Below are positions 2,524 to 58,840 of a stretch of DNA of 64,000 bases, piece by piece (positions within the stretch are counted from its first letter, which is position 1; each line of letters starts with the position of its first letter). The notes beneath the pieces were generated by a model, which was not told the DNA's origin, searched no databases, and saw nothing but the letters and a program-made list of their open reading frames with translations. This stretch comes from Lepidodermella squamata. Taxonomy: Eukaryota; Animalia; Gastrotricha. The DNA is taken from NCBI GenBank assembly GCA_047495785.1, contig JBLDXI010000034.1:434001-498000 (forward strand), written 5' to 3'. A program made the translations under genes and the position numbers.

Positions 2524-5346
2524 ATGGAACCAAGGACGCATCGATCCATGACGGAGTTCACTATTGTCAAAGCCTTGCGTTATGGCCGCCTACGACAATC
2601 GTATTTGTACAAACGTATCGGGAACTCTCAAGAGCAAGTGGTTATCAAAGAAACCAACTTGACAACCCTTCGCAAGACATTTGAGAAAGACTTTGCCAGA
2701 ATTGTTGAACTTCTCCACGAACGAGTGAGTTATTGTCAATAGATGCCTTATTGGGGGTGTTTTACGCCTTTTACACTTGAAATATCAATCAAACTCAAAG
2801 TACATAGTTTGAATAAGTTTACTACAAAGACAAATTAGGATTATCCTGAGAAGAGTCTGTACACCTCAAATCGCGCACATTTTCAATTTGCAGGATTTGT
2901 TAATGGTCGATATCAGCCATGCAAACATTGTCAAGGTGTTTGACGCTTCCGAACGTAACTTTCTACTTTCAACACTTTAACTGCCAAAAATCGACCGTGA
3001 GACCCAATATTTAGGTCTAATTCCTGGGTCTGTCAAAAAGTCGTGTTTTTCGGGTAAACGATGCGTCCTAGGGCAAAATGCCCGACGGCAAAATGTAGGC
3101 CATGAGCCCGCGGTTCTTTTGACACCGAACTCGGGGCCATAAGGTCTGAGCAGGTCTTTGAAAATGACAGTTGAAAAACGCCGAAATTTTGGATTAGAGC
3201 CAAAAATCAGACCCAAGAATTGGACCTAATTATTAGACCCAGATTATGGCGCAACAATCGAAATTTCATTGTTTTTCAACTGTCATTTTCAAAGACCTGC
3301 TCAGACCTTATGGCCCCGAGTTCGGTGTCAAAAGAACCGCGGGCTCATGGCCTACATTTTGCCCTAGGACGCATCGTTTACCCGAAAAACACGACTTTTT
3401 GACAGACCCAGGAATTAGACCTAAATATTGGGTCTCACGGTCGATTTTTGGCAGTTAAAGTGTTAATTCAGACATAGAAGTTCTTTTTAATAATATTCCA
3501 ACTATAGAGACATATTCCGGTGAAGACTTTTCTTCCCATAACTGCATGATGAGATATTTGGTTATGGAGGTTTGCGGGGGAGGGAGTTTCGAAAGCCTGA
3601 TCTCGACTGAGACTGGACCAATCCCGGAAATTATGCTTCAAATATGGTCGCGCCAACTTGTATCCGCTTTGGCTTATCTTCACGGCCGGAGGATTGTTCA
3701 TCGCAACATAACGACAAGCAATGTATTACTAACAGAAGACCGAGGCACATCGAAACTAGCTGATTTGGGAATCGTCGAGAGATTAGACACGTAAGATTGA
3801 AAAGAAGCATTAAATACTTGATGAATTCGATATTCAAAACAGTGGTTCGCAAATAACCGCTCTAGCTGCATGGTACCCTTCCGCTCCTGAGATTTTCAAA
3901 TCTCAAACGAAATCATCTCCAAGTGATGTTTGGTCGTTGGGATTCGCGCTCTTCAAATTAGCCAACTTTCAAGAACCAGTATGGGAATGACCTTGCGTGA
4001 TTACTTACTAAGTTATGATATAGTTTTACAGTTCATCTCGATGATGGATATTCTGAGGTAAATTGTTTAGTTGAATTAAGCTAAACTCAATAATACTTTA
4101 GTAATAACCTGAAACCATTTAACGAGTCCCGCGGCTATTCCGATGACTTCCGCGATTTTGTTATGTCAATGCTCGCCGTGAATCCTGATGATCGGCTGAC
4201 CTCGAGTCAGCTTAACGCCAGTAGTTTTCTGCTGAAATCAGCACCCATGCGTTATACAAAGGTATGATTGATTTTTCCATGTCGTTTGAATTGTTGCTTG
4301 AAGATTGATTTGTCGTACCTTTTATTCTTCAGCCAGACCAAACAGTTGTCGAACCCAACCAAGAGGCTGTTAAGGTAGCTCCAAACTATTTTACATCTGA
4401 TTCAGGGGTTGGTTATTCGAATTGCCAGGAGCTAGTTGACTGCATATGCCGGAGAAAAAACGTCTTGAAATTGGCGCAGCTACTGTCAAAAAGGGACCTC
4501 GGTCTGAGTCCAGACTGCAAAGACGACATGGGACGTCCTCTGTTGGATCTTGCGGCTGAGAGAGGCTACAACGACATAGTGGAAACTTTGGTCAGGCAAT
4601 TCGATGCAGACGTTGATGATCGTAATGCAAATGGCGTAAAGCCACTGTCGATCGCCGCCTTCAATCGCGATGTTGGGATGGTGAGGATGTTGGCTAGTGA
4701 TTTCAACGCCGATGTTAATTCTGCCACCAATGATGGCCGTACGCCGCTGTGGACCGCCGCCTTCAATGGCAACACCAAGGTGGTGAGGATGCTGGCTGGC
4801 GAGTTCAATGCCAACGTGAATAAAGCCAATAAGGATGGCTGTACGCCACTCTACGTCGCTGCCCGCAATGGTCACATCGAGGTGGTGAGAACGCTTGCTA
4901 GCGAATTCAACGCCAACGTGAATATGGCCACAAATGATGGCGCGACTCCACTGTTCGTCGCCGCCCAGAATGGCCACATCGAGGTGGTGAGGATGTTGGC
5001 TGAGGAGTTCAAATCTGATGTTAATTCTGTCAGAAAGAGCGGTGCGACACCAGTGTACGCCGCCGCCGAGAAGGGCCACCTCGAGGTGGTTGAGGCACTA
5101 GCTGGCCACTTTCACGCCAACGTGAATGCTGCATGTAATGATGGCATGACGCCGTTGATGGCAGCCGCATATAAGGGCCATCACGATGTTGCTAATATTC
5201 TCATCATGAAATTCCGAGCCAATATCGACGCCGTAGATCGCCATAACAGGACAGCCATAGATTGTGCCACGAACTGCCATGCAAGTGTTTCTGCTGATGA
5301 CAAGCGCAAGACTATCGCACTACTCGAACGGGATAAGTCAAAATAG
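2524..5346 (+). CDS. Pseudokinase-ankyrin repeat protein, copy 1 (about 608 aa, 7 ANK repeats + cap)
   Basis: Exons 2524-2724, 2894-2954, 3508-3790, 3843-3978, 4032-4057, 4102-4261, 4333-4374, 4429-5346 join in frame with GT-AG. Motifs: VVIKE, HANIV, YLVME, HRNITTSN, KLADLG, APE, SDVWSLG, then 34-aa ANK repeats. Confidence 0.85.
2973..3462. mobile_element. Palindromic piggyBac-like MITE in intron 2 of pseudokinase-ANK copy 1
   Basis: About 200-bp inverted arms beginning CACTTTAACTGCC. Flanked by tcaa/TTAA. The paralogous intron at 11134-11192 lacks it and has TTAA at that position. Confidence 0.85.
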
Positions 5347-6852: not shown

Positions 6853-7430
6853 AAGCGTTCACCGTTCCCGATAAAACTGCAATTTAAATGGAAAAATTCT
6901 CCGATATCAGCAGCATTCAAAGCCGACATGAGACATGAACATTGTTTCTAAACACCTGAGGGCACCTGGTAGCTAACATGCCAAAACCTAGCTCCGTGGG
7001 GGGCATGAATAATCATCAAAAAAGGAAAAAATCAAAATCGCAAAACCCAGTCAAAACCCTATGCTAGGCCTATACTAGGCTCCTCATTTCTAGGCCTAGG
7101 CTGGGCTCGAATTCGGCCGCTTTTTTGGGCCCAGTCTAGGCTTTACTGGGCCTACAGTAGGCCTAGACCCAGAGGTATACGTAATAACAATTAAGACTGG
7201 CTACCCTCTGCTCCCTGAGCTGTCAGGTGCCTGTAACTATTGCATGTCGACTCGTAACGTTGTTTGGAAGAATCGAAAGACAAATCACTCGCTCGTGATT
7301 TGTGTCGGTGGTTGGAGTCGAGCGCGGGTCGCCTTACCAAAGAGGTGGACGCGCTACCACTAGACCAGCTGGTCCCACAGTAAGGGTTAATAGGGGTATA
7401 AAAGTTTCAAGCTGGGTTTTTCAATTTGCT

Positions 7431-8030
7431 GCGGACGAAATCGCCGCAGGAGAACGAGCAGATTGTGCGCTATTGTCTGCTATTGCCTCGACTGGCGAAG
7501 TTGAGAGAGAGAGAGGTGCCGGACCTCCGGTTCAGGCTGCGGCTCCGCCGCTAGGAGAACCCTATCGGATTGGTTCGCGCAATCATCTAGGTCAAGAATT
7601 TTACGGCCTCGTTTTCGCTGGGTTAACGTCGCAAATTGACAGCAAATCACGGCCGGAGTTGGTTGAATGGCTGCTGGAGGCTAAAACGGCGACGGCTAAA
7701 TTTTTGGCACTTCAACGCGAATCTGGCGGCGGTTTGACGGCGAGTGATAAGGAAATAGCGGCATTTCAGGCCGAATTGGATTCGATTGTTGACTCGTTTT
7801 TAAATGTTGTGAATCATTTCGACATTGCTCAGCTTGCTTTCAAGCGTTTTATTGCATTTATTGTCGCTTAAAATTGTTAATAAATAAATTAATAAAAATA
7901 TTTTAGGTGACCGAAAATGACGCCGAGATTTCATTAGGGTTTTATCGGCTATTCAGCACTTCGATCCTAATTTCTGAAATTTCAGTCGAAAATTATGGCA
8001 ACGTATTCCAAAAGCTGCGTAACCAATTCT
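7431..8030 (+). pseudogene. Truncated, interrupted copy of the helical gene at 2-1076
   Basis: Near-identical to 571-1040 but with a ~100-bp insertion at about 7480-7584, no 5' part, and indels in the last exon. ORF 7302-7871 is a chimera. Confidence 0.75.
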
Positions 8031-8656: not shown

Positions 8657-9852
8657 ATGGCACCTGAAAAGAAAATCATTTCTGTTGTAGGAGCAACTGG
8701 ACAACAGGTAAAGCATCGAAATTCTTAGATTCTTCCTAAAGTTTGTTCAATTTCTGAAGGGCGGTTCTGTTGTTCGAGCGATTTTGGAGGATCCTGCCAC
8801 CGAATTCAAGGCTCGAGCTTTAACCCGCGATGTCAACTCGGCGAAAGCCAAGGCCCTGGCTGAGCAAGGTGTCGAAGTCGTTCAGGTCGATGCTAATGAT
8901 GAGGACGCGTTGGCCGAGGCTATCAAAGGCTCGTATGGATTGTTTTGCGTTTCGGTAATCGACTGGACCGATCCAGATAAAGAAATCGCACAGATCAAGT
9001 CGATGGCTAACGCGGCAAAGCAAGTTGAAAAATAATTTCCTACTTGTCCTAGGAATAATAATCCTCGCTCAAACGCTTTAATATTCTCATTCTAAAAAAA
9101 TCCTACAAAGAAATTAAAGATATTTTATTTGTCTGTATTTTAGGAAAGCTGGAATCAAACATGTTATTTGGTCTACCTTGGATGACCCTCGCAAATTTGG
9201 ACCGCTAAGCGACGATCATTATCCAACTTTGCACGGCAAGTACAAAGTAACGCATTGCGAGACGAAAGCTGGATCTGACAAATTCTTCGATGGCCAGCCT
9301 GTTACCTATCTGATAACCCCAGCATTTTGGGACAACTACTATACTGGCTTTTTCCCAATGCATCGCGGCCAGAATGGTAAATTGATTATCACAGTCCCAA
9401 TGGGGCATGTTAAAACGCCTGGCATGGCCGTAGACGATATTGGTCGTTGTGCTTACGGAATTTTCAAAGACCCAACTTGGATTGGCAAGCGAATTGCAAT
9501 TGCTAGTGAATCGATGACGGTCAGCGAGCAAGCGGAGAAAATTGGCAAAGTTCTAGGTGAGGAGGTTGTGTACCAGCCTGCGCCTTTCGAAGTTTTCCGG
9601 AACTTGCCGTTTCCTGGTGCTGGCGAATTGGCAAACATGTTTCAGTTTTGCCAGGATTTCTCCGAGAAATTGAATGCTAGCCGCGAAGCTACGAAGACGC
9701 TGAACCCGAAACTCATGAACTTTGATCAGTTTCTGGCGAAGTACCTACGGCAAACTTATCAAAGCTCCTTGAAGACCTTGGGAACATCGGGAAAATTGAC
9801 TCTTTCGACACTTCGGTTCGGATATAAGGGAAACTCCTTGAATAATCACTAA
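8657..9852 (+). CDS. NmrA/HSCARG-family (atypical SDR) protein, copy B, with frameshifted C-terminus
   Basis: Exons 8657-8707, 8760-9019, 9144-9852. GATGQQG Rossmann motif, ALTR, KHVIWSTL. A 4-nt insertion near 9745 replaces the GKLIKAP end with a longer tail. Confidence 0.85.
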
Positions 9853-10301: not shown

Positions 10302-13300
10302 ATGGAACCAATGAAATATCGATCTATGACATCGTTCTCTGTTGTTAAAGCCTTGCGTTATGGCCGCCTACGAAAATCTGTGTTGTGCGAACATAACGGG
10401 AGCCCTCAGGAACAAGTGGTTATCAAAGAAACCAACTTGACAACCCTTCGCAAGGAATTTGAGAAAGACTTTGGAAGAATTGCTGAACTTCTCTACGAAA
10501 GAGTGAGTTATCGTCAATATATGCCTTATTTTGGCATGAGACGTACTATAGGACGCCGCGGCTTGCAGAAAATCAGAAAAAGCGTGATATTTTTAATGAG
10601 GTCCAAAGTCCAACTCGCCCAATGAGTCATCTCATTACATTTTTGCAATCATCTTAAGCCTCTTTTTTTGCTTAAGATCAACGAGATTAACACATCTTTA
10701 CACAGCGTCACGCCGATCTTTTGCTGTAAAAGAATTCTCAGCAGTTTTTAATTATTGACATTTATTGACATAAAAAATTAAAATGTTATAAATTAAAAAA
10801 TTTTAAATTTCGAAATTACTGGACTAAAAATTAAATCGTATGCACGGAATATTTATGCACAGTGGGTCGCAGCCGCGGGGTCATGTAATGGGAGCTTCGA
10901 AGCCGCGGCGTCCTATAGTACGTCTCATGTATTTTGGGGGTGTTTTACGTCTTTTCCACTTGAGTTATCAATCAAACTCAAAGTAGTTTGAACAAGTTAA
11001 CTTCGAAGACAAATTAGGATTATCCTGGGAAGAGTCTGTACACCCCAAATCGCGCATATTTTAATATTTCAGGATTTGTTAATGGTCGATATCAGCCATG
11101 CAAACATTGTCAAGGCGTTTGACGCTTTTGAACGTAACTTTCTACTTTAAATTCAGACATAGAAGTTCCTAGTAATAATATTCCAACTATAGAGACATAT
11201 TCCGGAGAGGATTCTTCTTCTCTCAACTGCATGATGAGGTACTTGGTGATGGAGTTTTGCGGGGGAGGAAGTTTCGAAAGCCTGATCACGCCTGAGACTA
11301 GACCTATCCCGGAAATCATGCTTCAAATATGGTCGCGCCAACTTGTATCAGCTTTGGCTTACCTTAACGACCGAAAAATCGTTCATCGCAACATAACGAC
11401 AAGCAATGTACTGCTAACAGAAGACCGAGGCACAGCTAAACTGGCTGATTTGGGAATGGTCGAGAGATTAGACACGTAAGATTGAAAAGAAGCATTTAAT
11501 CCTTGATGAATTCGATATTCAAAACAGTGGTTCACAAATGACCGCTCTAGCTGCGTGGTACCCTTCCGCTCCTGAGGTTTTGAAATGTCAACCGAAATCA
11601 TCTGCAAGTGATGTTTGGTCGTTGGGATTCGCGCTTTTCAAATTAGCCAACTTTCAAGAACCAGTATGAGAATGAACCTATATACGCGATGATTTACTTT
11701 TGTTTTATCATTCCCCAGTTCATCTCAACGGCGGATATTTTAAGGTAAACTCATGAGTTGGATACAGAGGTCTCAAGCTTAAATCTATGATAATTTAGTA
11801 ATAAACTGAAACCATTCGACGAGTCACGTGGCTATTCCGTTGAATTCCGGGATTTTGTCATGTCAATGCTTGCCGTGAATCCTGATGATCGACCGGCCTC
11901 AACTCAGCTTATATCCAATAGTTTTCTGTTGAAATCAGCACCCATGCGTTATACAAAGGTATGATTGGTTCCCATGTCTTCTGAATTGTTGCTGCAAACT
12001 TGATTCATCTTTCCTTCTATACTTTAGCCAGACCAATCATTCGTCGAACCTAACCAAGTGGCTGTTAAGGTAGCTGCGGATTATTTTACAATTCATTCAG
12101 GCTTTAATTATTTATATTGCCAGGAGCTATTTGACTGCGTAATGAAGCGAAAAGATGTGTTGAAATTGGTGCAGCTACTCTCTAACAGTGATCTCGGTCT
12201 TAGCCCAGACTGCAAAGACGATGATGGATTGCCTCTGTTGTCGCTTGCAGCTGGGATTGGCTACAACGACATTGTGGAAACTCTGGTCAGGCAGTTTGAG
12301 GCAGACATTGGAGTTCGTACTGCTAGAGGTTCGACACCACTGTTGATTGCCGCCGGCAATGGCCATGCCGAGGTGGTGAGGATGTTGGCTGGCGAGTTCA
12401 ATGCCGATGTTAATTATACCAATATAGCTGGCGCGACGCCACTTGGGATCGCCGCCAACAATGGCCACACCGAGGTAGTGAGGATGTTGGCTGGCGAGTT
12501 CAATGCCGATGCTAATTCTGCCAATGAGGATGGATTGACGCCACTGTATGCCGCCGCCTTCAGTGGCCATACCGATGTGGTGAAGATGTTGGCTGGCGAG
12601 TTCAACGCCGACGTGAATACTGCCTCGAAAGATGGCTTTACGCCACTGTATGTCGCCGCCTCCAAAGGCCACAGCGAGGTGGTGAGGTTGTTAGCTGGCG
12701 AGTTCAAGGCGAACGTGGAATCGCCGAACAAAAATGGGGCCACGCCACTGTTTGTCGCCGCCCAGAATGGCCACATCGAGGTTGTGAAGATGTTGGCTGG
12801 CGAGTTCAAGGCGAACGTGAAATCGGCGCTCGAAGATGAGGCAACGCCACTGTTTGTCGCCGCCGAGAATGGCCACGGCGAGGTTGTGAAGATGTTGGCT
12901 GGCGAGTTCAAGGCCGACGTGGAATCGCCGAATAAAAATGGGGCAACGCCACTGTATGCCGCCGCCTTCAGTGGCCATACCGATGTGGTGAAGATGTTGG
13001 CTGGCGAGTTCAACGCCGACGTGGAATCGCCGAATAAAAATGAGGCAACGCCACTGTTTGTCGCCGCCGAGAATGGCCACGGCGAGGTTGTGAAGATGTT
13101 GGCTGGCGAGTTCAAGGCCGACGTGGAATCGCCGAATAAAAATGGGGCAACGCCACTGTATGTCGCCGCCCAGAATGGCCACATCGAGGTGATTGAGGCA
13201 CTAGCTGGCCAATTCAGCGCCAAAGTAAATGCTGCTCGTAATGATGGTATGACCCCGTTGATGGTCGCTGCATATTTTGGACATCACCATACTGCTGAAG

Positions 13301-13449
13301 TTCTCCTTACGAAATTCCAAGCAAACATCGACGCCGTAGATCGCCGTAATAAGACAGCCTTGCATTGGGCCACGAACTGCGATGAAAGTGTTTCTGCTGA
13401 TGACAAGCGCAAGACTATCGAAATACTCGAGCGGCCAAAATTAAACTAG
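10302..13449 (+). CDS. Pseudokinase-ankyrin repeat protein, copy 2 (about 744 aa, 11 ANK repeats + cap)
   Basis: Exons 10302-10502, 11073-11133, 11193-11475, 11528-11663, 11719-11744, 11799-11958, 12028-12069, 12124-13449. Same kinase exon sizes and motifs as copy 1. Confidence 0.88.
10535..10929. mobile_element. MITE with 30-bp perfect TIRs and 8-bp TSD (P-element-like)
   Basis: TIR CATGAGACGTACTATAGGACGCCGCGGCTT. TSD TATTTTGG at 10527-10534 and 10930-10937. Absent from intron 1 of copy 1. Confidence 0.9.
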
Positions 13450-15402: not shown

Positions 15403-16515
15403 ATGGCGCCTGTAAAGAAGATCATCTCTGTTGTAGGAGCAACTGGTCAACAAGTAAATCATCGACATTTGGTAGATTATTTTTTTAATTTGTTTAATTT
15501 ATTAAGGGTGGATCTGTTGTTCGAGCGATTTTAGAGGATCCTAATACCGAATTCAAGGCTCGAGCTTTAACCCGAGATGCCAACTCGGCGAAAGCCAAGG
15601 CCCTGGCTGAGCAAGGTGTCGAAGTCATTCAGGTTGATGCTAATGATGAGGACGCGTTGGCTGCGGCTATCAAAGGCTCGTATGGCTTGTTTTGCGTCTC
15701 GGTTGTCGATTCAATTAATCCCGATAAGGAAATTACCCAGATCAAGTCCATGGCCAACGCCGCAAGGCAATAGTCTATACTTACCGTCCCAAAAAATTAA
15801 ATATTAATTAATGAGTATTAAAATTTTTATAAATTAAAATTAAAATTAAAGAAATATTGGATAATTTACTTCCCTGTATTTTAGGAAAGCTGGAATCAAA
15901 CATGTCATCTGGTCCACCTTGGATGACCCTCGCAAATATGGACCACTCAGCGACGATCGATTTCCAACTTTGCACGGCAAGTACAAACTGCCACACAACG
16001 AGACTAAAGCTGGGTCTGACAAATTCTTCGATGGCCAGCCTGTTACGTTCATGGTAACCACAGGATTTTGGGACAATTACTACACCGGCTTGTTTGCACT
16101 GCATCGTGGCCAGGATGGAAAATTGGCGATCACAGTGCCGATGGGGCATGTCAAAACGCCCGGAATAGCTGTTGACGATATCGGCCGCTGTGCTTGTGGA
16201 ATTTTCAAAGACCCAACTTGGATTGGTAAACGCATTGCGATTGCTAGTGAAACAATGACGATTGGAGAGCAAGCTGAGAAGGTTGGAAAGGTTCTGGGCG
16301 AGGAGGTTGTGTACCAGCCTACGCCTATCGCAGTTTTCAGGAACTTTCCGTTTCCTGGCGCGGCTGAATTGGCGAACATGTTCCAGTTTTGCCAGGATTT
16401 CTCCGACCAATTGAATGCTAGCCGAGACTTCGAAGCTACGAAAAAGCTGAACCCGAAACTCATGAACTTTGATCAGTTTCTGGCGAAGTACGGCAAACTT
16501 ATCAAAGCTCCATGA
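15403..16515 (+). CDS. NmrA/HSCARG-family protein, copy C (313 aa)
   Basis: Exons 15403-15453, 15507-15766, 15885-16515. Second intron is GC-AG. Intact frame. Confidence 0.9.
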
Positions 16516-17886: not shown

Positions 17887-20555
17887 ATGCTACCTGAAAA
17901 TAAAATCATTTCCGTTGTAGGAGCAACTGGACAGCAGGTACGATATCGAAATGTTGAGATTATTCCTGAAATTCTCTCAATTTTTGAAGGGCGGTTCTGT
18001 TGTTCGAGCAATTTTGGAGGATCCTGCAACCGAATTCAAGGCTCGAGCTTTAACCCGCGATGCCAACTCGGCGAAAGCCAAGGCCTTGGCTGAGCAAGGT
18101 GTCGAAGTCGTTCAGGTCGATGCTAATGATGAAGACGCGTTGGCTGCGGCTATCAAAGGCTCGTATGGCTTGTATTGCGTCTCGGTTATCGACTGGCATG
18201 ACCCAGAAAAAGAAATTACCCAGATCAGGTCCATGGCCAACGCGGCAAGGCAAGTTATGAAAACATACTTTCCTTCTTGTCCTAAAAAATGAGAATTTAA
18301 GCTCAAACGCTTTGTCCACGTAAAATGGAAACATCTCATGACCAGAAAAATTTTAGAAAAATAAACAAAATCACGAAAGTATTTCACTTTTTAATGGGGT
18401 GAAAAAAATCCGGAGAAATTTTGTCCAACCTGGTAAAATACCGAACATTACCAAACCAGTTACCATCCGGGTTTTCCGGGATTTCACTTGTACATTTTTA
18501 TTTCTTCGGTTAAATCGCGGAGTAAAGATGGAATACGTTCTCGGTATGTTGAAGCTTTTTTATAAAATTAGCTTTTATTCCGAATTCCGGGCCTTCCGAA
18601 TTGCACAATCAAAGGGTAAAAATGGACGAAATTTTTTAAAATTTCAGGGCCGCCCGCGCTAATGTCAAAAGGGTATACAGGGTGGCCAAAAAATTCCGCA
18701 GAGCGGGAATTCGCTTCGCAACAATTTAATGAGGAGTTTTAAGAAGTTGGAGAATTTCAAGCATTTTTGCCAATGGAACTCCTCAATTTCTTGAAACTCC
18801 TCATTAAATTGATGCGAAGCGAATTCCCGCTCTGCGGAATTTTTTGGCCACCCTGTAGTTGAATTTCCTTATTCAAAAATTTAAATTTGAAAAATAAATA
18901 AAAAAAACTAAACAATTGTTGCGCAACTTCTGAGACACACTGTAACCTCCCTAAAATGAATTATCATCAAATTTTTAGAAATTAAAAACATCCCCACCTA
19001 ATTAATTTGGTAAAAAATACAGCTTTTCTCAGGAAAAAATTCAAATGATTTATTATTTTCCCTCAATTACCGTAACGTGTGGTGATTGTGGACACGGTAA
19101 CTTTGGACACTTTCGGCTTTGCAGGTGTTTAGCTTTTCAGGGTTGAACGTTTAAATCATGGGGGGTTTTGCATAAAATTCTCCGTCTCCTCAGCTTTCGT
19201 TTGAAATAAAAATCAAGACAATTGGAGCTGAAATCGGATTTCAGAAAAAGTTGCAAGCAGTTAGACTTTGGGTGCCGTTTTGGGACCCCCCTTCTATCTT
19301 TCTAAACAGTTTCAATAAAAATCGAACAGTTTTCAATAAAAATTGGCATGAGCATTCTCCTATATTTACTCTCCCTATAATCGAAGAAAAAATGACAATC
19401 CGTCGACGCGTTTTAGCAGGACATTCACCTGAAAAACAGGTGAAAATTGGGGTAATTTTGGACACTTCTGGACGGGTTAAGTATGCTGCTGCGCAGAAAC
19501 GTATTTTTATTGAACTTCCGAGAAACAGATGATGCGCCATCTGTTCATAATTTTTTTCGAAATCTGACCCAAGATTAAATGAAAAACCATGAATAACAGA
19601 TAATTCACTATGAAATTGCAATGAAATTGCATATGCAAATGAGTGTCCAAAACTACCCTCTAATTGTCCAAAGTTACCGGAACACATATTAATTAGCCAA
19701 AGGTCAGGTAAAATTCCAAAAATTTCTAGAATTTGCAATAAATTCAAGAATCACCGTCCCCACCTTTGGTAAAAATTTCAGAAATTTAGGAGCAAAGGCT
19801 GATTTTTAAGTTTCGAAAAACACGTTTTGTCCAAAGTTACCACTCGTTACGGTATAATTTAAAATTTTCGAGTACAAAAAATGATAAATTAAAAAAGAAT
19901 TCGCGATATTTCCTTGCATTTCAGGAAAGCTGGGATCAAGCATGTAATTTGGTCTACTCTGGATGACCCTCACAAATTTGGAACATTGAACGACGATCGG
20001 ATCCCAACTTTGCACGGCAAGTACAAAGTAGCCCATTGCGAGACAAAAGCTGGCTCCGACAAATTCTTCGACGGCCAGCCTGTCACCTTTATGGTAACCC
20101 CGGGATTTTGGGACAACTACTACACCGGCTTGTTTCCAATGCATCGTGGCCAGGATGGTAAACTGACGATCACCGTGCCGGTTGGGAATGTCCAAATTCC
20201 TGGCATGGCTGTCGACGATATCGGCCGCTGTGCTTACGGAATTTTCAAAGACCCAACTTGGATTGGCAAGCGAATTGCGATTGCAAGTGAGAAGAATTCT
20301 ATTAGCGAGCACGCTGAAATAATTGGCAAGGTTCTAGGTGAGGAAGTTTTATACCAGCCTTGGCCAATGGACGTGTTCCGGAACTCACCTTTCCCTGGCG
20401 CGGCTGATTTGGCGAACTTTTTCCAGTTTTGCCAGGATTTCACCGAAGAATTCAATGGTAGTCGCGACTTTGAAGCTACGAAAAAGCTGAACCCGAAACT
20501 CATGACCTTTGATCAGTTTGCGGCGAAATACGGCAAACTTATCAAAGCTCCTTGA
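17887..20555 (+). CDS. NmrA/HSCARG-family protein, copy D (313 aa)
   Basis: Exons 17887-17937, 17990-18249, 19925-20555. GC-AG intron 2 is expanded to about 1.7 kb by MITEs. Confidence 0.88.
18678..18855. mobile_element. Tc1/mariner-type foldback MITE
   Basis: TA-CAGGGTGGCCAAAAAATTCCGCAG...CTGCGGAATTTTTTGGCCACCCTG-TA. Confidence 0.9.
19070..19852. mobile_element. TA-flanked MITE with CCGTA termini (Tc1/mariner-pogo type)
   Basis: TA-CCGTAACGTGTGGT...ACCACTCGTTACGG-TA. Related to 59235-60049 and a relic near 29500-29800. Confidence 0.8.
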
Positions 20556-32317: not shown

Positions 32318-35300
32318 ATGCCAGAATTTAAACGCGAAAAATCGAGAATTTTCGCGACTCAACTTGGCGCTCAAAGAAATGACGCTACTACCGAGCTTCT
32401 CGATTACCTAACCAGCAATAGCGACGGCTCTTTTCATCTAATTCTGGACAATCCTGAGAACAACGAGCCTATCGAGATTAATACGGTTCGCTATTCAAAG
32501 ATGAATCAATTTATTTGATTTTTTCCAATTTTTAAGGTGGACCTTTTCTTACTATTTATTGCGAAAGATTATAATGCGGCTGGAGATGTTAGAAAAGCCG
32601 ATCAAGCCGATAGAGGTCAAGTACCGCTGATGACCATTTACCTGAACGAGCTCAGACCAAACCCATCCGGACTTCTCGGCACCATAATTTCAAACTGTAT
32701 CGACTGTCTAAATTACTTCGAAAATGCTAATGTCGAACATTTGGGCAAGGAATTTCTCGCGAAAATTCAGCAAATTTTATCCGCGACAAAGTTGCGAACT
32801 TTCAGTTTCCCGGCTAATTTAGCTGGCAAATTTTTCCCACGGTCGAATGAGGTCACGAAATCATTGCGCAGCGCATTTCGTGACGCGTTGCAGGGTGACC
32901 GCAATAAGCTGCTGGTAATTGCGGGTCCGGAGGGTGTCGGCAAAACCACCTTAATCGCTAATTTCCTACGCAACCCTGCTAATCACGGCGATATGAAGCG
33001 CGCTGTTTGGATTAGCGGCTATAAGTGGCACGCAAATGCCGTGTTTACGAGTGACGCAATCAGTGAGGCGCGACGGATTATTAAGGCGGATGTTACGCGA
33101 GATTTGCGCCACCTGCCCGCTGATACGCGACCGGATGTGATGATTTTCGACGATATCAGCCACTTTTCTATCGTTGATAGCCTTCACGCAATCTACTCGG
33201 GCGATAACACGCTGGTTGTAGTACTGACTAATGACCGGCATCTGACTTCAATGAAGTTAGACACCAGATGGCACGCGATCACGCAAAATGTTGTAGAACT
33301 ACCGCCGTTTACTGACCACGAAATTATTTCATTCGCGAAAATCTACTCGCCAGGGCTGGAGAAGAAACTAAGCCAGGCTCAACTGAGAGAATTAGCCCAG
33401 AGAAGTTACGGAATCGCGAGAAATGTCGTCCAATTCTGCGAAAGTTTCCGCTGCATTGCGAAAACCGGAAGTCACAGCGACTTCGAAAAGCTGGTAGGCA
33501 ATGCGTTGCGGAGCCTTGCCCCACCTGTTAACTACCATGGCCTGGACAAAAAGGGGCCTTTCACGAGCCCGAGGGTTGAAACAAGTCGAGGTAGGTCTCA
33601 AACAATGCTTCAGATCTCAGAATCCGGGCAAAATCTCTACCCGCCACCAGCGTAAGTCGAAACCGCTCTCCCTAGCAACGGTTGCCAAGGACTTTGTTTT
33701 TACCTAGATATTACGATGTTCCACGTTTTCAGCCCTATCTCAACCGGAAGGAGGAAGAAATGCGGGTTTTATCTGGAATTAAAGCCCTGGCAACATCTGA
33801 CGACCCATCAATCGGCTTCTTCCTGATTTTAGGCAGACCCGGTATCGGGAAAACAACCCTGGTATCAGCTGCTCTTCACGAACCGGCTTATCACGACTTT
33901 GTGTCTAACATTTGCAATATTCAAATCGTGTTCTATCTAAGCAATCCTTGCCGTTTCAAGTCTGAGAAGCAATTTGTCGATGTTTTGTTGGAACTGGGTG
34001 CCAAAGAGGCGCCTGATTACGCCAATGAAGCCACACCTTGGTTGAATCTATCTGAAATGGTCACATACTTCGAACGGGTCAGGAAACAGCGAATTCTCTT
34101 CGTGTTCGACGATGTTTTTGATCAGTTATTGCTGATTGATTTCCGGAAAAATTGCCCAACTGGACTCTGCGTTGTCATAACGAATCAAGAATTTGAAATT
34201 TTCGATCAAATCACGAAATCTGGCACTTATACTGTTCCACCTCTAACCGACTCTCAAACCCTCGAATTATTTCAAAATCAGCTGAATTTGCGGAATCGGC
34301 TTGGAATGCATCATATGACCTTGTTATCGCAGCGATTTTGCAATGGCTCGTCGTTGATCGCCGCTCAAATAGCCGGTCAGTTCGCCCGATCTCGTCGAAT
34401 TGTGAAAAAATTCGAAGAAATCACATCTAAATTCGCTCCATGTCGTTTTGAGATCGATTTATCCCACGAAATGGCGAAAACAGCTTTCCAGTATCTCGAT
34501 GAAGATTCAAAGCTATGTTTCCTCACTTTCCTAATCTTCGACCCTGATGAGCCGATTTGTCTACATGATCTAGCCGTTATGCTGGCGAGAGAGGAGAAGG
34601 ACGCGAGTCAAATTTTGGAGACACTTCAAGATTTCTCGTTAATTCGACGATCTGAGCTGAAAACGGCGACCAATTACCACATGCATCGCCTGTGCCATGA
34701 AACCGGTCTATTGATCGCGACTGAAATGTTTCGAGTTTCAAATCTGCCGAGCCTAAGATTGAAAATTGTGAGAAAATTGGAGGCGAGCCAAAATTTGATT
34801 GATTTCGCACATCGTTTGATCGAAGGCGATTGTTACGTAAGACTTTGCGATATTTTCTCGAAAATTCTTAAGGCGGATTATGGAAGTTACTCAAAAGATT
34901 GCAAGACCCCAACGAAGTTGCAGGATTCCCTGGGCCGAACTGCTTTAATGGCAGCTGCTCGATGCGAAAATCTCCCGATGCTCCGACAACTCTACAAATC
35001 ATGTAAAGACGCCGTCTCACTTCAGGACAATCAAGGCCGGACTGCTTTTATTTGGTCGTTTTTGAAGGCGAATAACCTGGAGGTCACGAAGTTTTTGTAC
35101 GAAGCTTGGCCTATGGCGATCGATAAGAAGGACGCGAGTGGGAAGTCAGTCTTCACTTTGGCTGTCGAGGCTTGTCACGATGTTGCGATTCTAGAGTTCC
35201 TATTAGATAACGATCCTCGATTTCTGAAGGACCAAAACGAAACAACTGGAGGCACGACCCTCATGCATGCGGCTCGTTGCGGGAATTTGACAGCGGTTGA

Positions 35301-35700
35301 GTTGGTTTTCAGAAAATGGCCAGATTCAGTCGCAATCTTAGACAAACGCGGCCGATCAGCGTTGATGTGGGCGTGCGAACGCGGCCATTTCGCCGTAGCA
35401 CGTTTCCTCTTTGAATCTTGGCCTGAAGCTGTTCAGTTGAAGGAAGTAGACACAGGCGAGACTTGCCTCATGCTGGCATTGCAATCTGGGAGTTTAGAAC
35501 TGGTTAAATTCATCTATGAAGCTTGGACTGACGGCCTGGAGGTTGAGTCTATGACTAAGAAAACTGCTATGTCGCTGGCGATCGAATTGGGCCAGATGGA
35601 GCTCCTTAGATATCTTCATGACGTGTGGGCTGCTCGAATGACTTTCGTCGCTGCGATCAAAGCTGATCCTGCTGAAGATGCGGATGATGAAAAAGAATGA
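32318..35700 (+). CDS. NLR-like protein (about 1091 aa): TIR-like domain + two tandem STAND (NB-ARC-like) NTPases + ankyrin repeats
   Basis: Exons 32318-32485, 32537-33651, 33708-35700 join in frame. Walker A GPEGVGKT and GRPGIGKT; Walker B VMIFDD and ILFVFDD; winged-helix MHRL; about 7 ANK repeats. Confidence 0.85.
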
Positions 35701-54610: not shown

Positions 54611-55341
54611 TTTCATTTGGCGGATAGGGCGTTAGGTGGCATAAAAAAGTGGTCGCATGCCGCAGCATTTGCAAATTCGGCTCAAATATGTAAATTCACA
54701 ACGGGGAGATTGTTAGTTTCCTATCTGTTACAGTGTTGTCTATATGTATCCAACCCCACAAAGGAATTCAAAGGTAACTGACTCAGGGTATTCCGGACAT
54801 AACAGCTCAGTGTGAATATTCTCATGCGAATTGAGGTCAAAGTTCACATTGAAGCGAGATGATGATTTAAAGAAAAAGAAAAAGAAAATAAATGAAATTT
54901 TACAATAAATAGTTTGTTAAATTCCCAGTGGTAGAGTTTGATAAATTAGAATTTTTTTCTGTAATTACCGATTACTGAATTTGCTCATCCGGATACGATT
55001 AGACAAGAGCTGATATCTTTATCCTTCGAAGAATTATTTATCTTCCATTTTCCATTCAGCACTGAAAAGCAAAATGTAGCAAATGTTTCGCTTTTTCTCA
55101 GGAATTGCAAAATAGATAGACTACAACCAAAGATAAAACCTGAGCAAAACGGTTCTACCGGCACACGGCACACTTTAGAAATATACAAGCACGGCATACT
55201 GGCTGGTATGTTATATGATAAGACGAGCTCCTAATCGCCGCAAAACGACAGAAATTGCACTTATGTCAAGCTTTCATCATGTTCTCTATTTCTTAAGGCC
55301 TATTTTTTGTCTCAGCCATCAAATTCAACCAAGAATTGAAT

Positions 55342-58300
55342 ATGGATCCAAGGAGGCATCCATCTATGTCGGGGTTCACCTTTGTTAAAAACTTGGGTGA
55401 TGGCCGCCTACGAAAATCTGTGTTGTACAAACATAGCGGGCGTAAACAAGAGCGAGTGGTTTTCAAAGAAACCAACTTGACTATCCTTCGAAACGAATTT
55501 CGAAACGACTTCGATAGAATTGCTGAACTTCTGAACGAAAGAGTGAGTTTTAAGTTCTACGAATTGTAGATTTTCGATTCAAAATCATCATGAGGGTAGT
55601 GAGAGGTTACTTCAATGAGGGATTAACCTGGTGAAACGGCCGGCTAACTCCTATAATTTATGTAGTAACAAGTATGTTTCAAAATCGCAGGATTCGTTAA
55701 TGGCCAGTATCAGCCATGCAAACATAGCCAAGATTTACAACGCTTTCGAAGGTTTGCAATCCAGTTTTTCGAATTATCCTAAAAATTTTGACATAGAGGA
55801 ACTCCAAGGTTCTCGCATGAGATACTTGGTGATGGAGTTTTGCGATGGTGGAAGCTTCGAACGCCTGATCTTGACTGAGACTGCACCCATCCCTGAAATC
55901 ATGCTTCAAATATGGTCGCGTCAACTCGTATCAGCTTTGGTTTATCTTCACGGCCGAAGAATCGTTCATCGCAACATAACGACAAGCAATGTACTTCTAA
56001 CAAAAGACCGCGGCACAGCGAAACTAGCTGATTTAGGAATCATTGAGAAATTAGACATGTAAGATTGCAAAGTAGCGTTCACTCGGTGTCAAGCTTGATT
56101 GTCTAATCAGTTGTTCGAAAATGACTGCTCTAGCGAAGTGGAGGACTTCCCCTCCGGAGGTATGGAACGGTCAACCGAAATCATCTGCAAGTGATGTCTG
56201 GTCGCTGGGATTTGCGCTCTTCAAATTAGCCAACTTCAAAGAACCAGTATGAGAAATAACCTAAGTGATTAGTTTTTTTTTGAAACTCAAATAATTTCCC
56301 AGATCGACTCGACAGGTGATATCATGAGGTAAAGCTGGGGAGTTGAATTCAGTGTTCAGTGGTCGCAAGCTACATTTTTTTATATTTATTTTGATATAGT
56401 AAAAACCCTTTGAAACCATTTGAGTCCTCTCCTGGCTATTCCTATGAATTCCGCGGTTTTGTTATGATAATGCTCGCTAGGAATCCAGGTGATCGGCCGA
56501 ACTCAAGTCAGCTTCAAGCCAGTATATTTCTGCGGAAATCAGCGCCCATGCAGTATACAAAGGTTTCATTACTTTCTAAATAATCTGAATTCTCGCTTGA
56601 ACCCTAATGCATCGTTGCTTTTATTCTCCAGTCAGTCGGTCAACCCAGCCTAGGGGATGTTGAGGTAGCTACAGATTTGTCCACTGTTGATTCAGGCTTT
56701 TGAGCTTTGCCAGGAGCTGTTTAAATGTGTACGGCAGAAAGACGTGTTGAAATTGGTGCAACTGCTGTTGAACAGGGACCTAGGTCTTAGCCCTGATTGC
56801 AAAGACACCATGGGGCGTCCTCTGTTGTATCTTGCTGCTGAGACAGGCTACAGCGACATTGTGGAAACTCTGGTCAGGCAATTCAAGGCAGATGTTGAAG
56901 TTAGAAACAAAAATGGCGCGACTCCACTGTGGGCCGCCGCCAAGAATGGCCACGTCGAGGTGGTGAAGATGTTGGCTGGCGAGTTCAAGGCCGAAGTTAA
57001 TTATGCCAACAGTGCCCTTGAGACGCCACTGTATGTCGCAGCCAAGAATAACAAACTCGAGGTGGTGACGATGTTGGTTGGCACGTTCAAGGCCGTCGTG
57101 AATAAGGCCGCAAATGATGGTCGTACGCCACTTTTTATAGCCGCCCAGGAGGGCCACGTCAAGGTGGTAGAAGCACTTGCTGGCCACATAGCCGCCCAGC
57201 AGGGCCACGTCAAGGTGGAAGAGGCACTTGCCTCGGTTAATGATGCAAAGAAAGCATTGACTGAGGCCGCTGATAAGAAACATTTCGATGTTGTCGATAT
57301 CTTGTTCACGAAATTCGGAGACAAAATCGACGCCGCTGTCAGACACGATGCAATCGAAAAATCTATGCTCGCAGAGCATCCTGGGATTCGACCGACGTCT
57401 AGTCAGCTTCGATTCAGTTATTTTTTTCTGAATTCGGCACCTATGCGGTATACAAAGGTATGATCAATTTCCCCCACCTGAAATCTGTTGCAATCATGCA
57501 TTGTTCCTTTCCTTCTTCAGCCGGACCATTCATCCGCCGAACCCAAGCAAGAGATTGTTAAGGTAGCTCCGAATTATTTTACACTTGATTCAGTTGTTAG
57601 TAATTGAAATTTCCAGGAGTTATTTGACTGTGTACGGGGGAAGAAAGATGTTTTAAAATTGGTGCAGCTACTGTCGAACACAAACCTCGGTCTTACCCCT
57701 GATTGCAAAGACGAAAAGGGCTTCCCGCTTTTATACCAGGCTGCTCGAAACGGCTACAGCGACGTTGTGGAAACTCTTGTCAGGCGATTCAAGGCAGACG
57801 TTGAAGTTCGTACTGCATATGGCGCGACACCACTGTTTGCAGCCGCCTTCAATGGCTACGTCGAGGTGGTCCGGATGTTTGCTGGCGAGTTCAATGCCGA
57901 CGTGAATTCTACCACTACTGATGGTCGTACGCCACTGTACATCGCCGCCCAGAATGGCCACACCGAGGTGGTCCGGATGATGGCGAACGAGTTCAAGGTC
58001 GATGTTAATTTTGCCACCAATGATGGCCGTACGCCACTGTTCACCGCTGCCTTCAATGGCCACATCGAGGTGGTGAGGCTGTTGGCTGGCGAGTTCAATG
58101 CTGATGTTAATTCGGCCGATAAGGGTGGCTATACGCCAGTGTACGTCGCCGCCTTCAATGGCCACGCTGACATTGTGAGGCTTTTGGCTGGCGAGTTCAA
58201 GGCCGACGTGAATAGGGCCGAAAAAGATGGACTTACACCACTGTACGCCGCCGCCTTCAATGGCCATACCGACATTGTGCGGATTTTAGCTGGCGAGTTC

Positions 58301-58840
58301 AAGGCCGATGTTAATTCGGCCAACTATCATGGCTTTACGCCACTCTTCGTCGCCGCCGAGAAGGGTCATGCCGAGGTGGTGAGGATGTTGGCTGGCGAGT
58401 TCAAAGCCGATATTAATTTTGCCGCGAAAGATGGCTGTACACCTCTGTACTTCGCCGCCCAGAAGGGCCACGCCGACATTGTGAGGATGTTGGCTGACGA
58501 GTTCAACGCTGACGTTGATTCCGCCAGCAATGATGGCGTGACGCCATTGTACATGGCTGCCCAGAACGGCCACGTCGAGGTGGTTGAGGCGTTAGCTGGC
58601 CTATTTAAAGCCAACGTGAATGCTGCATGTAATGACGGCATGACACCGTTGATGGCAGCCGCATATAAGGGCCATCACGATGTTGCTGAAGTCCTCCTCA
58701 CGAAATTCGGAGCCAATATCGACGCCGTAGATCGCAGAAATAAGACAGCCATAGATTGGGCCCATAACTGCGATGAAGGTGTTTCCGCTGATGCCAAGAA
58801 CGAGACTATCGTAATATTCGAGCGGACTAAGTCAAAATAG
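55342..58840 (+). CDS. Pseudokinase-ankyrin protein, copy 3 (about 963 aa) with two tandem ANK cassettes
   Basis: Exons 55342-55542, 55691-55751, 55797-56058, 56111-56246, 56303-56328, 56400-56562, 56632-56664, 56714-57457, 57521-57562, 57617-58840, all in frame. Confidence 0.82.

Follow-up and report, generated by a model that had tools for sequence, protein, structure and literature searches.

The gastrotrich Lepidodermella squamata carries, within a 64,000-nucleotide stretch of contig JBLDXI010000034.1 (assembly GCA_047495785.1, positions 434,001 to 498,000 of the forward strand; hereafter the window), a gene for a kinase-like domain followed by ankyrin repeats, which we refer to as gene B. 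It is one member of a tandemly duplicated family whose products combine a conserved dead Ser/Thr-kinase-like domain with a single-exon ankyrin solenoid of 34-residue units. One repeat of gene B, unit B7, consists of three segments that each match other units of the same array without a mismatch, and unit B8 copies unit B6 with a single difference. This mosaic is most simply explained by in-register exchange of units, through unequal crossover, conversion, or both. A previous reading of the letters alone (the sequence-only reading) had proposed such recombination within the intron-free exon, and both the in-register offsets and the zero-mismatch three-way chimera favor it. We consider it probable that units and cassettes were recently exchanged in register within gene B, with neutral or nearly neutral turnover on a generic ankyrin surface as the more economical account. 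As it stands, the finding mainly illustrates the ordinary unequal-recombination dynamics of a tandem-repeat protein. Coordinates are positions in the window, and features lie on the forward strand unless marked otherwise.

A chimeric repeat in gene B

The array occupies the last exon of gene B (12124..13449), which was delimited by its open reading frame, Pfam matches, and splice acceptor. It runs without an intron through a short N-terminal helical lead-in and 12 ankyrin units (B0 to B11) to the stop codon. Each unit is 102 bp (34 aa) long, and the spacing is exactly 102 bp for nine successive copies. The internal units, B1–B8, are eight blocks of 102 bp at 12325..13140.

Two exact tracts mark the exchange. 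A donor-like tract in B3 (12538..12615), covering codons 4–29 and hence the helix cassette, is identical at 78/78 positions to the middle of B7 (12946..13023), at an offset of 408 bp; the sequence-only reading had seen 75 of these bases (12541-12615 = 12949-13023), all 75/75 identical. The second tract starts at the second base of B6, extends 22 bases into B7 (12836..12958), and recurs with 123/123 identity, at an offset of 204 bp, as B8 plus the first 22 bases of B9 (13040..13162). Here, too, the match that had been recognized (12837-12955 = 13041-13159, 119/119) proved correct and somewhat longer. No other exact direct repeat in the 64-kb window, which contains no N, is as long as either tract, and the 123-bp tract ranks first. 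Units are otherwise 70–87% identical to one another; a 78-bp run would then arise by chance with a probability of 0.8^78, or ~3e-8, and both runs lie far beyond that expectation. Every exact match of at least 26 bp inside the array is offset by a multiple of 102 and is thus in register.

Segment by segment, B7 is a chimera. Its head (nt 1–21) shows 0 differences to B9, with 2 to the next-best donor; its middle (nt 22–78) shows 0 differences to B3, with 9 to the next-best unit in the window; and its tail (nt 79–102) shows 0 differences to B6/B8, with 3 to the next-best donor. B8 differs from B6 at one position in the whole unit, the first base (GAT, Asp, in B6; AAT, Asn, in B8). The tracts end within the invariant ACGCCACTG (TPL) and GCCGACGTG (ADV) codon blocks. 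Taken together, the part-by-part matches of B7, the in-register offsets, and the position of the tract ends point to two kinds of moving piece: a helix cassette (unit positions 7–26) or a hairpin cassette (positions 30–34 plus 1–3). The exchange also appears to be much younger than the gene duplications, since B6 and B8 have zero synonymous differences and the kinase regions of the paralogs differ at a synonymous proportion (pS) of 0.22–0.30, or ~0.25.

Mispairing by whole units is possible in such an array because the units are of equal length, lie in a single exon, and share invariant DNA blocks. Equal 102-bp units carrying the invariant TPL and MLAGEF..A.V blocks would let homologous recombination in the germ line align them out of register, and a two-unit step (offset 204) would then yield B8 as a copy of B6 and place the head of B9 onto B7. 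One unequal crossover at offset 2, between B9 and B5, whose heads are similar, could account for B8 and for the head of B7. Such a simple crossover predicts a B5-type remainder and tail in B7, which is not seen, so further exchanges are needed; a subsequent patch exchange may have carried the B3 helix cassette (offset 408) and the B6/B8 hairpin tail into B7. In all, at least two and probably three exchanges would be needed, with conversion from B3 as well as from B6/B8, or else an unseen donor. The outcome would be a longer solenoid (12 units, versus 8 in array A and 11 in array D) that displays a new combination of pre-existing surface cassettes. If the concave face of the solenoid binds a partner, this combination may have altered the binding. 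Both unequal crossover and exchange are known for repeats of this kind in fungal NLRs (PMC4986451, PMC12222747).

Repeat anatomy, surface variation, and the alternatives

The start of the ankyrin exon at 12124 fits a ...CCAG acceptor, and this acceptor, an upstream 42-nt micro-exon, and its GT donor are conserved before all four arrays of the window. Pfam places Ank_2 (E 1e-83) and Ank (E 1.3e-80), both of clan CL0465, on the exon, and sequence matches in the PDB are to NOMPC, ankyrin-1, and long designed ankyrin repeat proteins (DARPins), with E values of 1e-140 to 1e-100. AlphaFold2 with a 68-row alignment returned a model with a pLDDT of 96.8, a pTM of 0.92, and helix pairs every 34 residues, in which helix 1 corresponds to repeat positions 5–11 and helix 2 to positions 15–24; a Foldseek search superposed it on the 12-repeat DARPin 6mol_A and on AnkB R13-24 (5y4f) with TM scores of 0.81–0.83. 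On this confident model, the exon is predicted to encode a curved ankyrin solenoid of helix-turn-helix and hairpin units. The extra residue relative to the canonical 33 sits at the end of helix 2 (MLAGEF versus LL.xG in HMMER alignments). A single-sequence AlphaFold2 model, all-beta with a pLDDT of 56, was discarded and superseded by the alignment-based run. A protein word search with the array returned only generic ankyrin proteins at no more than 48% identity, and no ortholog.

For comparison, the window holds array A (4465..5346, 8 units), array D (57659..58840, 11 units), and array C (56687..57463), which is truncated and degenerate and continues in the same frame into what is left of a kinase last exon (about 57363-57458). 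The terminal units are specific to their position in the array, as the sequence-only reading had supposed for the first, last, and cap repeats across paralogs. B0 (12223..12324), an N-cap-like unit with the pattern GxPLL..LAA..GY.DIVETLVRQF, is 75–76% identical to A0 and D0 and at most 53% identical to any unit of array B. At the other end (13141..13449), where B9, B10, and the C-cap B11 are followed by the stop codon, the nearest units are A5/D8 for B9 (78–80%), D9/A6 for B10 (79–81%), and A7/D10 for B11 (79–82%). Across arrays, identities reach 83% (A0–C0), 91% (A6–D9), and 82% (A7–B11), against 30–50% to units of the same array, and the first, antepenultimate, penultimate, and cap units form well-supported position clades in a maximum-likelihood tree; they are orthologous by position.

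Internal units behave differently from these clades in the per-repeat alignment and tree: their branches radiate as an unresolved star, with B5-B6-B8 the one clade that has good support, and they do not cluster by array (17 label changes versus 18.4 when labels are shuffled). Units of arrays A and D are often best matched in other arrays, and units of A, C, and D are as near to those of other arrays as to their own. Amino acid similarity to the consensus is 0.875 over 136 aa for B5–B8, 0.847 for B4–B8, 0.776 for B1–B8, 0.743 for array A, and 0.752 for array D. The claim of recent in-register shuffling, made originally for the arrays at large, thus stands for array B, with its offsets in multiples of 102 and its chimeric B7, and is not supported for the others, which lack internal exact matches of at least 26 bp and are similar to their consensus at 0.74–0.75 in A and D.

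Two further observations concern the exon. At 12220, in the GAC GAT GAT GGA stretch that immediately precedes B0, one contig of run X2 is shorter by 6 bases, so that two codons are missing and the frame is kept; the variant represents an allele or a paralog. Antisense open reading frames overlap the array at 12414-13223 (-), 269 aa, and 12691-13182 (-), 163 aa, and likewise the other arrays; they arise from the periodic, GC-rich pattern of codons and do not point to genes.

The 34-aa (102-bp) repeat with a near-invariant scaffold was described correctly by the sequence-only reading: across the 21 internal units of the four arrays, G2, T4-P5-L6, A9-A10, G13-H14, V17-V18, M20-L21-A22-G23-E24-F25, A27, and V29 are each kept in 16–21 units. 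Entropy reaches at least 2 bits at positions 1, 3, 7, 8, 11, 15, 31, 33, and 34 of these units. Variation had been placed in the two residues after TPL, the two after AA, and the hairpin. This is borne out for both residues after TPL, for the first after AA, and for the hairpin; the second after AA, position 12, is mildly variable (N16 K3 S2), and position 15, directly after GH and passed over in that description, ranks with the most variable. At positions 7 (Y/F/W) and 8 (V/A/I/T) the changes stay within one chemical class, and free variation is confined to about four positions: 3, 11, 15, and 33.

The binding face was fixed beforehand from designed libraries as unit positions 34, 1, 3, 8, 11, 12, and 32. 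In Binz et al. 2003, the DARPin library positions are reportedly 2, 3, 5, 13, 14, and 33 (here 34, 1, 3, 11, 12, and 32). Those of the ANK-N5C library are 2, 3, 5, 10, 13, and 33 (PMC4308713). Mean entropy is 2.0 bits at the predefined face positions versus 0.87 elsewhere (Mann-Whitney p = 0.0012), in agreement with the expectation that variable sites would be enriched on the predicted binding face. Of the DARPin library positions, 34, 1, 3, and 11 are highly variable and 12 and 32 moderately so, and the framework positions 7, 8, 15, 31, and 33 vary too. We find the description of the arrays as a natural DARPin-type library unsupported or overstated. Library positions were themselves chosen as the highest-entropy positions of natural ankyrin repeats (PMC4308713), so the match to the DARPin variability pattern is generic to the ankyrin fold and expected of any ankyrin array; moreover, the residues after TPL include the position of a DARPin framework His, and only the four or so positions above vary freely. 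On its own, DARPin-like variability is no evidence of diversifying selection.

Nor did the counts of replacement changes show significant positive selection at the variable sites, the site-wise check that the sequence-only reading had named. The nonsynonymous proportion (pN) there is 0.46–0.58 and pS is 0.44–0.50, as under neutral saturation. The ratio of the nonsynonymous rate (dN) at variable sites to the synonymous rate (dS) of whole units is 1.5–2.2, a value inflated by choosing the sites after the fact, and a ratio above 1 was rejected as evidence of selection because the site class was defined post hoc. Pairwise pN/pS among B3–B8 is 0.6–1.5, with no significant replacement excess (Fisher p at least 0.3); comparisons between units within one protein are a weak proxy for diversifying selection.

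Several alternatives bear on how the mosaic should be read. The identical tracts may have led an assembler to insert in gene B a collapsed cycle or units that belong to another member of the family; the true gene would then be shorter (e.g., B0–B6 followed directly by B9–B11). The 123-bp exact repeat has two entries (G or A as its first base) and two exits, a configuration that short-read assemblers resolve arbitrarily and 150-bp reads resolve only marginally. Short-read assemblies of such repeats are known to be unreliable, and highly internally conserved repeats are mis-assembled from 125–150-bp reads (PMC12222747). None of the contigs shown (Logan contigs of ~100–300 bp from two studies) bridges the identical tracts. 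These points weigh against a recent exchange, as do the facts that the order of events has no unique reconstruction (one crossover plus conversions versus two crossovers) and that a donor outside the window is possible. Arrays A, C, and D hold no internal exact match of at least 26 bp, which leaves one of the four window arrays with recent exchange; within this window, the phenomenon is not very general. An artifact nevertheless seems unlikely to us, given that tracts of this size can be spanned (marginally) by 150-bp reads or by read pairs, and trivially by long reads; that the window is gap-free across four paralogous arrays; that the product is in frame with all junctions in register; and that contigs of two independent studies cover every array bin at 90% identity or more, although paralogs may contribute to this coverage. 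The contig joints listed within the array skip 334 bp, or 314 bp with extra letters in between, and neither length is a multiple of 102. These joints have short anchors, are probably paralog artifacts, and were set aside.

Under adaptive diversification, in line with the inference of the sequence-only reading that recombination generates new binding specificities, the genes would form a germline-diversifying intracellular recognition system, with shuffling and positive selection on the concave face as in fungal NLRs whose repeats show high internal conservation (HIC). The enrichment of variable sites at face positions chosen a priori is what such a system would show, and B5–B8 exceed the HIC threshold of those receptors (0.875 over 136 aa); array length differs among the window paralogs (8, 12, and 11 units), the family is expanded in tandem, a STAND gene with NB-ARC and ankyrin regions lies in the same window, and the sole B6/B8 difference is nonsynonymous and falls at variable position 1. 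Yet the enriched positions are also the ones that vary most among natural ankyrin repeats generally (PMC4308713), pN is close to pS at variable sites that were chosen post hoc, and the pairwise ratios show no replacement excess. Three of the four arrays lack recent exchange and fall below the HIC threshold, internal units are not homogenized within arrays, and the exons read for gene B encode no NOD domain. We therefore hold adaptive diversification to be improbable, and give slightly less credence to its fuller form, by analogy with fungi, in which the family would be an animal counterpart of the HIC-repeat receptors, with the dead kinase as a signaling or scaffolding partner and gene B caught just after an exchange. 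Somatic rearrangement, by which the array would be diversified within an individual in the manner of lamprey VLR assembly and the assembly would have caught one variant, is extremely improbable: its only support is that exchangeable cassettes exist; among the listed contig joints none is in register (a multiple of 102), although contigs cannot show rare variants; and neither recombination signals nor cassette arrays in the flanks were seen. Recent in-register exchange in gene B, without a need for selection, remains the account we favor.

The pseudokinase and its tandem family

Gene B as a whole (10303..13449) is an inferred pseudokinase-ankyrin model with exons read in frame at 10303-10503, 11073-11133, 11193-11475, 11528-11663, 11719-11744, 11799-11958, 12028-12069, and 12124-13449; it is based on GT..AG borders, with introns mostly of 52–69 nt. 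The exons at 10303-11958 encode the kinase fold, with a Pkinase Pfam match at 11231-11476 (E 5e-15), and Pfam found no NTPase domain in the exons read. Two contigs of run X2 show the intron at 11664-11718 as a joint with GT..AG borders, and X2 coverage is largely restricted to the transcribed span; together, these suggest that gene B or a very close copy is expressed. Within the first intron, contig depth at 10570-10970 rises into the thousands (run X1), versus ~70–100 in the unique flanks, and this stretch is presumably a high-copy repeat or transposon fragment.

The catalytic loop, read from the sequence as HRNITTSN (11384..11407), has Asn for the catalytic Asp of HRD and Thr for the Lys of HRDLKPxN. 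It is identical at 3699 (gene A) and 55967 (gene C/D), and so common to the three kinase domains of the window. The Gly-rich loop is degenerate, and the VAIK Lys (as VVIKE) and the DFG Asp (as DLG) are kept. A pseudokinase is defined by the loss of at least one of K72, D166, and D184 (PMC3218828), and all three copies have Asn (HRN) in the place of D166. Because the catalytic Asp and the loop Lys are replaced, the domain is predicted to be catalytically inactive. The kinase exon is nonetheless under purifying selection among the paralogs, with pS of 0.22–0.30, pN of 0.05–0.09, and pN/pS of ~0.25–0.35. A 90-aa fragment of the catalytic core matches TYK2 JH2, GCN2, SLK/STK10, NEK1, and PLK4 about equally (E 1e-14 to 1e-11); it is a fragment only, and no family, NEK included, is favored over STE20, PLK4, or the pseudokinase domains.

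The family appears to have grown in multi-gene blocks. A block of an unknown helical protein (146-904 and 7302-7871), a pseudokinase-ankyrin gene (2600-5346 and 10303-13449), and an NmrA-like gene (9178-9852 and 15919-16515) occurs twice. Since the order is the same in both, growth by segmental duplication of such blocks seems to be the case, and a 68-bp exact match (689/7656) is common to the two.

Genes C and D look fused (55336-58840, +), with the junction at about 57363-57458. Array C has four recognizable units and a local out-of-register duplication of IAAQxGHVKVxEALA; it is followed by a 32-aa kinase last-exon remnant, 63% identical to exon 6 of gene B (E 2e-11), and then, in the customary arrangement, by a donor, the micro-exon, and the complete array D. 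Such a single gene with two ankyrin arrays would result if a deletion had joined two tandem members of the family.

Among the neighbors are three intron-poor NmrA/HSCARG-like open reading frames (9178-9852, 15919-16515, and 19914-20555, +). The best database matches of the third (19914-20552), the one searched, have ~50% identity and are to proteins labeled bacterial by their sources (Calditrichia, Niastella, Acidobacteriota) or to metagenomes, a pattern that would fit horizontal acquisition long ago with later tandem expansion. Two adjacent STAND-type NTPase open reading frames lie at 32537-35700 (+); in the second, an NB-ARC match (E 2e-11) precedes ankyrin repeats of a different, divergent type, and the two frames are unrelated in sequence to the 34-aa units.

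If the array structure is real and polymorphic, the association of a dead kinase with a variable ankyrin array in many tandem copies would make the family a candidate fast-evolving recognition or scaffolding system outside the usual NLR and LRR families. Gene B itself would then be a compact and tractable case (1.3 kb, one exon, three identifiable donors) and would show repeat proteins gaining units and recombining surface cassettes in an animal germ line.

Comparison with known repeat systems

The HIC ANK, TPR, and WD repeats of fungal NLRs (Paoletti 2007, Chevanne 2010, Dyrka 2014; PMC4986451, PMC2873952, PMC12222747) share with gene B single-exon repeats of 33–34 aa and in-register shuffling. 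In both, residues of the inner helix and hairpin vary on a fixed framework, and array lengths differ among members. For fungal NLRs, HIC requires internal conservation of 85% or more across 100 aa or more (PMC4986451), a level that only B5–B8 attain; the whole array and arrays A and D lie below it. The same survey found HIC in 0.8% of metazoan ANK/TPR/WD repeats (Dyrka et al., PMC4986451), which makes such arrays uncommon, though not unprecedented, among animals. The fungal system is further defined by concerted evolution, repeat-number polymorphism, and positive selection, whereas gene B comes from one genome and shows no array-wide concerted evolution, its units being no closer within one array than across paralogs. 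The domain partner differs as well: fungal NLRs attach their repeats to a NOD/STAND NTPase (NACHT/NB-ARC), and gene B has a dead kinase fold upstream. The hosts, finally, differ from that of gene B, an intron-containing animal genome.

With DARPins and ANK-N5C (PMC4308713, PMC8229355), gene B shares a consensus-like framework with caps and top variability at library positions 2, 3, 5, 10, and 13 (here 34, 1, 3, 8, and 11), and the structure of a 12-repeat DARPin superposes on its predicted model with a TM score of 0.81. DARPin units have 33 aa and those of gene B 34, with the additional residue closing helix 2; where DARPins have the framework His of TPLH, gene B units have Y/F/W; and positions 7, 15, 31, and 33 vary in gene B as well, whereas 12 and 32 vary little. 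The likeness is one of resemblance, not of relationship.

Wolbachia ank genes (PMC3287509) gain and lose whole units by recombination between tandem units, as appears to have happened here. They are bacterial, effector-like genes whose polymorphism has been shown between strains, whereas gene B is known from one genome.

An architectural parallel is found in the Nek kinases and Protein 21.1 of Giardia (Manning 2011, PMC3218828), a greatly expanded family in which an N-terminal kinase, dead in most members, precedes an array of 1–26 ankyrin repeats that relatives have gained, lost, or resized. The Nek-ankyrin proteins are thought to function in targeting or scaffolding (PMC3218828). This likeness implies no homology between the two expansions. 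The repeats themselves set them apart: those of Giardia are divergent and carry a TALM motif, and the units of gene B are near-consensus, with TPL(Y/F) and the MLAGEF insertion.

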